Source of the DNA: Bugula neritina | Taxonomy: Eukaryota > Animalia > Bryozoa | Direction: 5' to 3' | DNA length: 64,000 bases | Assembly: GCA_964035545.1 (NCBI GenBank) | Contig: OZ037773.1 | Coordinates: 9,391,751 to 9,455,750, forward strand | In this document: piece by piece, positions 819 to 24,783 of the stretch | How positions within the stretch are numbered: position 1 is the first letter of the stretch | How the letters are laid out: each line of letters begins with the position of its first letter | Notes under the pieces: model-generated | What the model saw: only the letters and a program-made list of their open reading frames with translations | What the model was told of the DNA's origin: nothing | Databases searched by the model: none | Translations under genes and position numbers: made by a program

Positions 819-3800
819 ATGTCCACAAGTAAAAATTTTGATAGACTGTTGGAGTTGATAAAGGAAAAAAATAAAATTAGATTTAGGCAAAAGCTAAGTT
901 CTCTAAGTGTTTCACAACGATTGGATGTTCTTAAAGAACAGGATGATCAACAGGTGACGTTACTTGAATGTGCAGCAGGATGGGGTCTTACTGAGATAGC
1001 AAAAGTTGTCATAGCTTTAGTACCAGCAAGTGAGCATTATAACATTCTAGCTATACAAGACATTAATGACGACACACCTCTCCATGTGGCAGCTTACTTT
1101 GGGCGGACAGGCATAGTGGAGCTTATAGCAAGTCTTCTGCTTACAGCTGATCTGTATCGTCTTCTGAGAATAAAAAACAAGGATGGGAATACTCCGATAC
1201 AATGTGGATTGAAGAACAGAAGAATTGAGACCGTGAAATTCAGTTTAAGGTGCTTTCCTGCAGCTGACATGTGTGAAGTGATTTCAATTCCAGACAATAA
1301 AGGAAACACTGTTTTGTCTTGGGCTGCACAGTATGGACTTATGGATGTGTTAGTACTGTGTGTAGATATTATTCCACCAGAAGAGTTGTATTCACAAGTT
1401 CTGGTAGCAGATAATGATGGTGACACAGTCATACATTGTGCTGCTTACGGGAACCAATCAGAAGCTGCTGTATACCTGCTTGACAAGTTGAAAAAAAGCC
1501 AGGTTGAAGAAATTTTAGAAATACAAAACAAAGAAAGTCACACTTTGATTAAATATGCAAACATTAAAGCTAACCATGAGTTTGTGACTCTAATTGAAAC
1601 TTATTTGAAAGATAGAGAAATTTTTCCAAAAGGTAAGGTTTAACAACCTGCTTTCAGCTTTGGTTGGAAACAATCAACATGATATTAAAATTTTGAGCTT
1701 TTGCATTATGCATAGTATATTATATTAGTACTCTTGTACGTGTTGGAAGTATGTAGGCCAAATTATTGTACACATGCAGTCAGGGTTGGGGTCAATTACA
1801 TATGAATGTAATTAATTACAATTGCAATTATATGAGAATTTGTCCATTACAAATACAATTATAATTACAGTTCAAATAAGTGTAATTAATCACTATTCCA
1901 ATTACTTTTGTTCTCCTTCTGGAGTCAAACTACAACGGGCAATTTTGACAACATACAGCCTTCTTTGTTCTCAGCAGTAACCAATAGGGTGACAAATACA
2001 CACTAAATTAATCTAAATCTTTTATTAAGCATGTAGGCAGGCAGTAAGCAAGGCAGGAAAAATATGAGTTTTATAAGATATAAAAATTGAAGTAAGTGTT
2101 ATGTAATTATAAAGTAATTGTAAAATTCAATTACATTAGCAATGTAATTAATTACAATCACATTGTGATATATCAATTAAAAATTACATTTAATTACTTG
2201 AAAAAAATGCAATTAATTACAACCAATTGCAATTACAAATTAAAACTACCCCAACCCTGCATGCAGCTTTATTTCACTCTGCTACCTTTTAAGTAACAGA
2301 ATACCTTACCATGCTTTATTAATTATGTTCAACTCATTATAGCTGTTGCTCAAATTTAGATTCAACTACAGCAGCTTCTACAGGTCATGACCTGTAGAAG
2401 CTGCTGTAATTGAATCTAAAATTGAGCAACAGCTATAATGAGTTGAACATTTTTCTCGGATCAATTTGCATTAACTATGAGAAAGATGTGCTGGCCAACA
2501 TTATAATTTTTACAGGTTGTATCTTTGACAAAATTATTTTTTAGTGCAAAATGGCTTGCAATAATCTTGAAATGTTTGACTTGCAGCTAAAATGCTACCT
2601 CTGCTCTAGACTCAAAGTACATATATATAGTTCAAAATGATGGATGCATAGAAAATAAATTTAAATTTATTGTAGACAGAAAACTGAAAGTTGACTTTAA
2701 CCAGAGCTTGTGTTCTGCTGATTCTCACAAGAACACAAGCTCTGCTGACAGTGGAATATCACTTGACGTTGAAACCAGTGTAGTAGACAGTGAGTGTATA
2801 ACTATTTCTCTAATACTGCAGGTACTATAGATAAGATCTACCAATGGTGGTCTAGTGAACAGATTCTAAACTAGCTGCACTCAAATGATGCGCCAATCCA
2901 GTGGTTGGCTTTGTTGAGCTGTTAGCAGAGCAATCCTAGCTTTTTTACTTACGAATGTGTGGTTTGGTCTGCATGAAAATAAGTACGGTACTCACAAAAA
3001 CGGTTTAAAGAATTCACTTTTTGAAGCCAAACTTTAGTAAACAAAATACAACTGTGAAGTGGTTTTAGAATGTCATATATAAAATTGTGTGTGACAGTTT
3101 GGTATAAGCTTAAAAATTTCAACTGCTATATGTTGCACTGCTTGGCCGTTGATACATGAAAAGTGTTTTGCCGGTTCAAAATGTAATGATGCAATGCTAT
3201 AAGTAAAACTCAAGTGTTTATTGCTTGTATATATAACACAATTTTTTGTATCCAAGTGACATTTAGGCTGCATAAAACTGTTGAGGTGCCATCGAGCTTA
3301 GCTACTCTAATTTTGGAGTAGGCTATAATGTAAACACAGATAAATATTATAGACTTTTATAAACTCACCACATTTTAATTGAAAATTTGGCACAAATATT
3401 TTCAATAATGTTAAGTAATTTTAGAATGTCAAATATAAAACTGTGACAGTTTGGTATAAACAGTTTAGAAATTTCAAACCGTATAACTGTGATAATGATT
3501 TTTATATGTTTGTTAGTTAAAGTTCGAAGTTCATGTTATATCTTGTTTCTATATGTGTTTATAAATTGTTTTGCTAAATATAGGCTTTAAATTTTCACTC
3601 TTTTAAAGTGACAACATAAAGGATTTGTGAATATCGAATGCTCATTTTATAGGTTTTACAACTTTACGTTTTGAAAAGTAAAACACCAAATTGTCCAAAT
3701 TTAATCTCTGTTAACAGAAAAAATGTAAACATAAAGACTATAAGCTGCATTTATTTCTTATTTCAGTGCTGCACAGTTTGAAGGTTGGAGAAAAGCTAGG

Positions 3801-24344: not shown

Positions 24345-24783
24345 GAACTTCAATGTACAGAGCTCCAGAGCTACTACACAGATATGCTCCAACCAAGGCA
24401 GCTGACATGTGGTCTATGGGTGTGACAGCACTCGAAGTCTTTACAGGTGAATAAACCAAAGCAACTGATAATTACACATTTACATGCAGCATCCTGTCAA
24501 CGTGGCATGTGTGAAATATAGTTATTCTGCAGATTCTGTACATACATAAGTTGCATTTATACTATTTTATTCTACAGGAGAACTTCCTTATGCTTTTAAA
24601 AATTTTGTTCGAGATAAAAGAGCGAGAGTACCCAAAGATCTTCTTGACAAAAAGCTTCCTCAGTCTCTCCAGATGTTGTCAAATAGAAATCAGAGAATCA
24701 TGCAGTTAGTTTTGACCTTTGAACCTGACCAGAGATTGCCTGCAGCTGATTGGCTTGAAAGGCTGGAAAGTTATCAAACTTAA
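24345..24783 (+). pseudogene. Orphan last two exons of a further ankyrin-kinase paralogue
   Basis: 24345-24446 (GTSMYRAPELL...EVFT) and 24578-24783 (ELPYAFKNF...LESYQT*) match exons 7-8 of copies 1 and 2. I saw no upstream kinase exons between 22487 and 24345. Confidence 0.85.

Follow-up and report, generated by a model that had tools for sequence, protein, structure and literature searches.

Caspase activation is usually explained through death-fold platforms built on the CARD and DED domains. Caspases with a prodomain of ankyrin (ANK) repeats have recently been described in all parasitic flatworms and in the annelid Alitta virens; they have no known activator, and an initiator role has been proposed for them (Genome Biol Evol 2024, PMC11463336; bioRxiv 10.1101/2023.12.11.571055). 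They were first seen in Schistosoma (Lee et al. 2014, as cited in PMC11463336), and single caspases with a kinase prodomain have been reported from Macrostomum and Eisenia, bryozoans being unsampled in that work (PMC11463336). Our own literature search turned up no paper on ANK-caspases of bryozoans. The architecture itself has precedents in other lophotrochozoans, and the locus analyzed here extends it to bryozoans, in the form of a large tandem family of predicted genes. This locus lies in a 64,000-nucleotide (nt) stretch of DNA from the Bugula neritina complex, hereafter the window (genome G000, positions 9391751-9455750 of the chromosome-scale contig C9, in an assembly of 216 Mb). It comprises ANK-kinase and ANK-caspase genes arranged head to tail, including a predicted hybrid gene in which ANK and linker exons of the kinase type precede the six exons of a caspase.

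The window is AT-rich (about 32% GC) and contains many microsatellites, and its genes are spliced. Comparison of the window with itself by blastn delimits units A (691-7940), B (7941-17260) and C (17261 to about 25134), arranged head to tail; in each of the three, an 814-nt ANK exon comes first, and a linker exon with phase-1 borders on both sides comes next. The three ANK exons begin with ATG, end at a conserved phase-1 GT donor and match the Pfam family Ank_2 with E values from 1e-23 to 1e-31, and the linker exons are bordered by AG and GT. When Pfam matches were checked exon by exon, those to Pkinase and Peptidase_C14 fell on the expected exons. The exons of the three units are as follows.

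819-1632, plus strand: ANK exon of unit A, 814 nt, six repeats of about 39 amino acids (aa)
2676-2789, plus strand: linker exon of unit A, 114 nt, phase 1/1, with the motif SSADSG..DVET
3767-3935, 4062-4197, 4771-4869, 5023-5116, 5816-5917 and 6050-6255, plus strand: six kinase exons of unit A, open frame
8077-8890, plus strand: ANK exon of unit B, 814 nt
9702-9788, plus strand: linker exon of unit B, 87 nt, phase 1/1
12677-12845, 12969-13104, 14135-14225, 14377-14470, 15144-15245 and 15375-15580, plus strand: six kinase exons of unit B, frame broken
17397-18210, plus strand: ANK exon of unit C (also called h2 below), 814 nt, kinase-type
18546-18632, plus strand: linker exon of unit C, 87 nt, phase 1/1
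19746-19900, 20220-20414, 20909-21128, 21404-21541, 21697-21806 and 22302-22487, plus strand: six caspase exons of unit C, all with GT-AG borders

The initial annotation of this stretch had proposed three tandem genes that share a homologous 814-nt ANK exon and a phase-1/phase-1 linker, and this layout is borne out by the self-comparison, the Pfam matches and the splice borders. The two junctions that it had placed between linker and effector, 2789>3767 in unit A and 18632>19746 in unit C, are canonical and in frame. The series of effectors that it had read, kinase, kinase and caspase, agrees with the Pfam matches and with the open frames of units A and C, but the kinase frame of unit B is broken. 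The linker motif, SSADSG(I/V)S(R/L)DVET in its general form, is common to the kinase and the caspase genes, and might represent a processing or phospho-regulated site.

Like the flatworm and annelid ANK-caspases, the Bugula gene models place an ANK prodomain in the position of CARD or DED, and they too come from a lophotrochozoan. Unlike those caspases, the Bugula family is greatly expanded and tandem, has at least two classes of ANK exons, and shares an ANK-linker module with sister kinases. With the CARD and DED initiators, such as caspase-8, caspase-9 and CED-3, the Bugula models have in common a long interaction prodomain, a p20/p10 caspase with an Asp-rich inter-subunit linker, and a proposed activation by induced proximity; they differ in the lack of a death-fold domain, in the six-repeat ANK solenoid with a 39-aa period and in the pentapeptide QACSG. 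On the kinase side, ILK, TNNI3K and RIPK4/ANKK1 also join ANK repeats and a TKL-like Ser/Thr kinase in one chain. The Bugula kinase is distinguished from these by its non-RD catalytic loop (HMDIKPHN) and by its membership in a small, lineage-specific family, in a comparison made through weak, exon-sized matches. Finally, in CAIAP (PMC5662874) and ANKDD1A, ANK repeats work together with death-fold and caspase signalling, although the similarity of these proteins to the long ANK exons of Bugula may be generic; in both, ANK is fused to a CARD or death domain and targets a caspase in trans, whereas the Bugula ANK would be joined to the caspase itself.

The predicted gene of unit C consists of eight exons that form a single open frame of 634 aa, with GT-AG at every border. 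At the amino acid level, its ANK exon shares 68-74% identity with the other short ANK exons, compared to 23-31% with the long ANK exons of the caspase type. Exons 2, 3 and 5 of the caspase part match positions 1-49, 51-130 and 167-213 of the Pfam profile PF00656, each above the 21.4-bit cut-off. Searches of PDB with the caspase exons, which are short queries, return CED-3, caspase-3 and caspase-8 about equally, and the search with the 36-aa exon 5 returned no match. The catalytic His (IIMTHG, corresponding to SHG) and Cys (VIQACSG, corresponding to QACRG) align with those of CED-3 and caspase-3. Candidates for the two Arg and the Gln of an Asp-specific S1 pocket occur in KRQGSDVD and SFRS (Arg) and in QACSG (Gln); judged by eye, they occupy the places of the pocket residues of caspase-3, and the exon 5 query gave no PDB alignment that could confirm them. 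Exon 1 carries an in-frame 18-nt deletion just before its donor; loss of this donor in unit C was considered and rejected, the conserved site being present after the deletion. At the DNA level, the placement of ANK repeats N-terminal to a caspase in one predicted polypeptide is supported by an open, splice-compatible model that is conserved in paralogues.

For a wider view of the cluster, 77 kb upstream of the window were added and all exon types were mapped. The order along C9 is c1-c5, k37a, kS0, h1, k37b and units A, B and C (h2). The first five are caspase genes, each located behind a distinct long ANK exon of about 545-600 aa; k37a is an ANK-kinase with a third type of ANK, and kS0 is a kinase with the short ANK. 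The gene h1 is a second hybrid.

C9 9376817-9381946, about 15 kb upstream: h1, the second short-ANK-linker-caspase gene, intact frame of about 627 aa

Only caspase exons follow the ANK and linker exons of h1, which has the same catalytic residues as unit C. Splice sites of all caspase exons are conserved across the copies in the cluster, and the long ANK exons have consensus phase-1 donors just ahead of their stop codons. Caspase exon 1 appears to be an internal coding exon because all seven cluster copies retain a phase-1 AG acceptor, about 35 conserved codons precede the first in-frame Met (DMINLPL), and this Met, present in five copies, is missing in c1 and c3. Two members of the cluster look like decaying copies, namely c2, with caspase exon 3 (9329010-9329233) of 224 nt compared to 220 because of a 4-nt insertion, and c5, with a long ANK exon (9354258-9355912) that is frameshifted and reads as two overlapping frames.

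Collinearity of the two hybrids begins in the spacer upstream, takes in the ANK exon, the linker and all introns, and reaches as far as caspase exon 6, where the homology ends. Because this collinearity includes the introns, h1 and h2 derive from one fusion event followed by duplication. An independent view is offered by the draft assembly GCA_010799875.2, in which a contig spans the same cluster at about 80-94% nucleotide identity; the short ANK exons are 68-74% identical to predicted proteins of its Bugula neritina contig VXIV02001928.1. Given that the nucleotide identity is only about 80-94%, the draft appears to stem either from another, related lineage within the species complex or from a haplotype that is highly divergent. 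The draft contains a hybrid of its own (L039:14044-21143), in which the short ANK exon is a mosaic, the linker region resembles that of unit B, the last ~45 nt of a c3-like long ANK exon are present and the caspase is of the c type, so that its breakpoints differ from those of h1 and h2. In the maximum-likelihood tree, the caspase of the draft hybrid groups with c2-c5 (support 98/94), and h1 and h2 fall together outside that clade (81/88). Because the draft hybrid differs both in its build and in its caspase clade, the effector swap appears to have occurred at least twice. An h1-like copy is also present in the draft, and the intron that immediately precedes its caspase exon 1 contains a degenerate Ty3/gypsy-like retroelement (L040:1-4328). 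On the minus strand, this element encodes a protease, a reverse transcriptase and an RNase H, in frames that are broken at several points, and homology to the genome of the window starts only at L040:4329.

The initial annotation had read the array as a modular system, and at the DNA level this reading stands, in that the ANK-linker module precedes either a kinase or a caspase through phase-1 introns and the intact caspase version occurs twice; the arrangement, however, is not unique to the window. The placement of one ANK-linker cassette on two different enzymes, with breakpoints in phase-1 introns, would represent a clean natural case of exon shuffling in progress.

Comparison of the two hybrids provides evidence on selection. 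At a synonymous divergence (dS) of about 0.23-0.26, both frames are open over ~630 codons, and the ratio of nonsynonymous to synonymous divergence (dN/dS, or omega) amounts to 0.56 in the ANK exon (p = 0.006) and to 0.36 in the caspase (p = 1e-5), which indicates purifying selection on the caspase. The noncoding flanks of h1 and h2 yield a neutral rate of 0.015 insertions or deletions (indels) per nt, of which 80% have a length that is not divisible by three. At this rate, about 12 indels would be expected in the ANK exon under neutrality, compared to the single one observed, which is in-frame and 12 nt long, and an ANK exon free of frameshifts would then arise with a probability of about 6e-5, a whole coding sequence free of them with one of 1e-10. 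Taken together, the indel test and the open frames indicate that the ANK exon is maintained as coding sequence in genes where only caspase exons come after it.

The ANK exon is also the site of elevated divergence. The upstream spacer of unit C, its presumed promoter region, is 96-98% identical to that of unit B, and the identity falls to 78-83% exactly within the ANK exon; likewise, the ANK exons of h1 and h2 share 85% identity, compared to 91-96% for the flanking introns. We aligned the six repeats in register on their TPLH anchors, which are spaced by 39-40 aa, and compared six positions, those that serve for binding in designed ANK proteins, a set chosen beforehand, to all others. The entropy among paralogues is 0.87 at these positions and 0.54 elsewhere (permutation p = 0.0005), which suggests a changing binding partner. 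A predicted complex between the ANK domains of units A and C scored 0.00, which is evidence neither for nor against their interaction. The proposal of the initial annotation that the ANK domain is a recognition surface thus gains indirect support, from the variability at the ANK binding positions and from the greater divergence of the ANK exon compared to the introns around it.

Taking these lines of evidence into account, we consider it probable that unit C is a chimeric ANK-linker-caspase gene which arose by intron recombination, is expressed as one mRNA and uses ANK as a long prodomain that drives activation by induced proximity. ANK-kinase and ANK-caspase families reside side by side in a tandem cluster that evolves by birth and death, and under this scenario ectopic recombination inside phase-1 introns would have set a kinase-type ANK and linker before caspase exons 1-6 with the frame unbroken; such frame-safe recombination is possible because every junction is of phase 1. 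The chimera would later have been duplicated to yield h1, upstream of the window, and h2, with a similar, independent swap in the lineage of the other assembly. Transcription from the ANK promoter would produce a single mRNA, and in the protein, by analogy, the ANK prodomain would bind a partner or ligand and gather caspase zymogens, in the same way as the kinase subunits may be gathered in the sister genes. Induced proximity would then activate the caspase, and in a pathway of cell death, immunity or allorecognition ANK would take the place of CARD or DED.

Several observations weigh against this scenario. The sensor and induced-proximity steps would follow by analogy only. No RNA run was found among the public sequencing runs searched for the stretch, and comparison of the ANK exon to 1.8 billion protein representatives returned only exon-sized frames and one muddled NCBI model, which fuses a kinase 3' exon to the next ANK exon; the NCBI annotation of the cluster in the draft is fragmentary, with no architecture visible. 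Decay is common in the cluster because several of its members are broken, namely unit B, c2, c5 and both draft ANK exons that were checked: the ANK exon of the draft hybrid is frameshifted, and another draft ANK exon, directly upstream of caspase exons, contains a stop codon. In single lineages, dN/dS of the ANK exon ranges from 0.54 to 0.84 and is in no case significantly below 1, the intact kinase gene of unit A included. Furthermore, the Met of caspase exon 1 in five of the seven copies could start a short caspase from an internal promoter.

This last point leads to a quite unlikely alternative, namely that the locus makes two products, an ANK-only protein (unless the ANK exon is a mere leftover) and a caspase of the effector type with a short prodomain, transcribed from its own promoter in intron 2 and started at the Met in exon 1. 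An in-frame stop located 8-38 nt past each ANK donor (at 18231-18233 in unit C) and the DMINLPL Met itself would fit such an arrangement. However, all copies conserve the acceptor of exon 1 and, as coding sequence, the ~35 codons before the Met, whereas c1 and c3 lack the Met itself; h1 and h2 retain the ANK donor, the two splice sites of the linker and the phase match, and h1 has nothing but caspase exons after ANK and linker. The many broken copies (the 8-nt deletion in unit B, the 4-nt insertion in c2, the frameshift in c5, and the frameshift or stop in the draft), along with the per-lineage dN/dS of ANK that is not significantly below 1, would be accounted for if the hybrids were young, functionless by-products of unequal crossing-over on the way to decay, their frames open by virtue of youth rather than selection. 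We regard this as very unlikely because some 630 codons are open in both h1 and h2 despite a dS of about 0.23-0.26, neutrality is rejected by the indel test, both for the ANK exon and for the whole coding sequence, and the caspase evolves at a dN/dS of 0.36. Still less credible, indeed extremely improbable, is an assembly artefact whereby collapsed or chimeric tandem repeats put caspase exons behind the 5' end of an ANK-kinase gene. The tandem array of units that are 80-98% similar, together with a palindrome, speaks for this possibility, but the architecture appears twice in this assembly, in copies that are 15% diverged and collinear across introns, and again in the independent draft GCA_010799875.2; moreover, one DNA sequencing run contains 92% of the words of the stretch, although this run possibly comes from the source sample.

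The fusion could also be real with a different role for ANK. In many kinases with N-terminal ANK repeats, these repeats have scaffolding or regulatory roles. A possible albeit doubtful reading is that ANK acts as an autoinhibitory prodomain or, like ankyrins, ILK and TNNI3K, anchors the protein to the membrane or the cytoskeleton, with activation coming from elsewhere. It would be in line with this general background and with the absence of an oligomerisation signal in the complex predicted for the ANK domains of A and C (score 0.00). Conversely, the diversification is centred on the canonical binding positions, and the ANK exon diverges faster than the introns and neighbouring spacers, so that a changing partner fits better than a fixed anchor. 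Beyond the chimeric gene with an ANK prodomain, which remains our preferred explanation, a more far-reaching proposal is speculative and, taken as a whole, unlikely: the ANK modules would serve innate immunity or allorecognition in bryozoans as recognition domains that are diversified in the germline. Exon shuffling would connect them to a kinase for signalling or to a caspase for death or proteolysis, with no NACHT or death-fold adaptors involved, and this reshuffling would still be under way in the species complex. Such a system would parallel the swappable sensor-effector build of NLR-type proteins in fungi and plants. Should transcripts confirm the fusion, the matched pairs of ANK-kinase and ANK-caspase genes would offer a direct route to the binding partner of ANK, and would show caspase activation without death-fold adaptors in a colonial animal that needs to discriminate self from non-self.

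The combination of ANK and caspase extends far beyond this cluster. At least 170 exon matches to Peptidase_C14 were found in the genome, and many of these matches form dense arrays. At 10 or more loci, distributed over five other contigs, caspase exons are preceded on the same strand by an ANK-like frame, at a distance of 1-2.3 kb. In each of the four loci that were inspected, the ANK frame (386-982 aa) starts with Met and has a GT donor near its end, and caspase exons 2-6 come after it. ANK-caspases thus appear to number dozens genome-wide, each apparently with a long ANK exon joined in phase 1 to a six-exon caspase. The initial annotation had missed that caspases with ANK prodomains are a large family in this genome and have already been described in flatworms and an annelid (PMC11463336). 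When compared to the protein collection, the long ANK exon of the caspase type gave only three weak matches, of the CAIAP/ANKDD1A type (24-26% identity), and a search of the protein atlas with ANK returned generic ANK clusters only. Very large expansions of caspases are located at 32.8-35.5 Mb of contig C1, at 2.5-6.3 Mb and 12.7-15.6 Mb of C6, and at 5.0-7.7 Mb of C7.

The kinase family, by comparison, is small, with 13 matches genome-wide that correspond to about 12 genes, and an ANK3-like exon lies upstream of every member. The model of unit A is an intact ANK-linker-kinase of 577 aa with a non-RD Ser/Thr kinase, in which the motifs GSGGQ, VAIK, HMDIKPHN (the non-RD loop), DFG and APE can be read. 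Searches of PDB with single kinase exons yield weak and mixed best matches, to CTR1, B-Raf, MLK and RIPK. Unit B retains the kinase motifs; its third kinase exon (14135-14225), however, is 91 nt long compared to 99 in unit A, with 8 nt (GTGGATTA) missing, and the rest of the kinase is out of frame after this exon, as assembled. Because this deletion shifts the kinase frame, unit B is likely a pseudogene, unless the 8-nt loss is an assembly error. In the intron after kinase exon 2, a G+C-rich minisatellite of ~280 nt in unit A (4332-4609) and ~590 nt in unit B (13361-13952) yields long spurious open reading frames on both strands.

Behind the caspase of unit C, two further kinase exons and a palindrome were found.

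24345-24446 and 24578-24783, plus strand: orphan kinase 3' exons, open, splice sites retained
23642-24256, no strand assigned: foldback palindrome, 615 nt, 97% identical to its own reverse complement

The palindrome consists of kinase intron sequence around a TA microsatellite and sits exactly at the point where the kinase is truncated, with the orphan exons directly behind it. Compared to units A and B, these exons show a dS of 0.25-0.29 and omega of 0.05-0.07, and the changes private to them comprise three nonsynonymous and six synonymous substitutions (omega 0.14, p = 0.004). The exon map of the cluster shows no relic of kinase exons downstream of h1. Because the relic has been constrained, the arms of the palindrome are still 97% alike and h1 has no such relic, the orphan exons more likely represent what is left of a separate kinase gene that lay downstream of h2, was once intact and has recently been truncated. 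The initial annotation had missed that these trailing exons look like the remains of a neighbouring gene rather than a replaced half of unit C. Replacement of the N-lobe exons of unit C's own kinase by the caspase exons was rejected on the basis of the constraint on the relic (omega 0.14), the dS of 0.25-0.29, the 97% identity of the palindrome arms and the lack of a relic in h1.

Elsewhere in the window, a (GA/CT)n microsatellite about 400 nt long was noted at 41100-41950. An open reading frame of 530 aa, rich in Pro and Ser and with internal repeats (NEPQGSYYSFF...), occupies 30462-32054 on the minus strand and is unrelated to the cluster.

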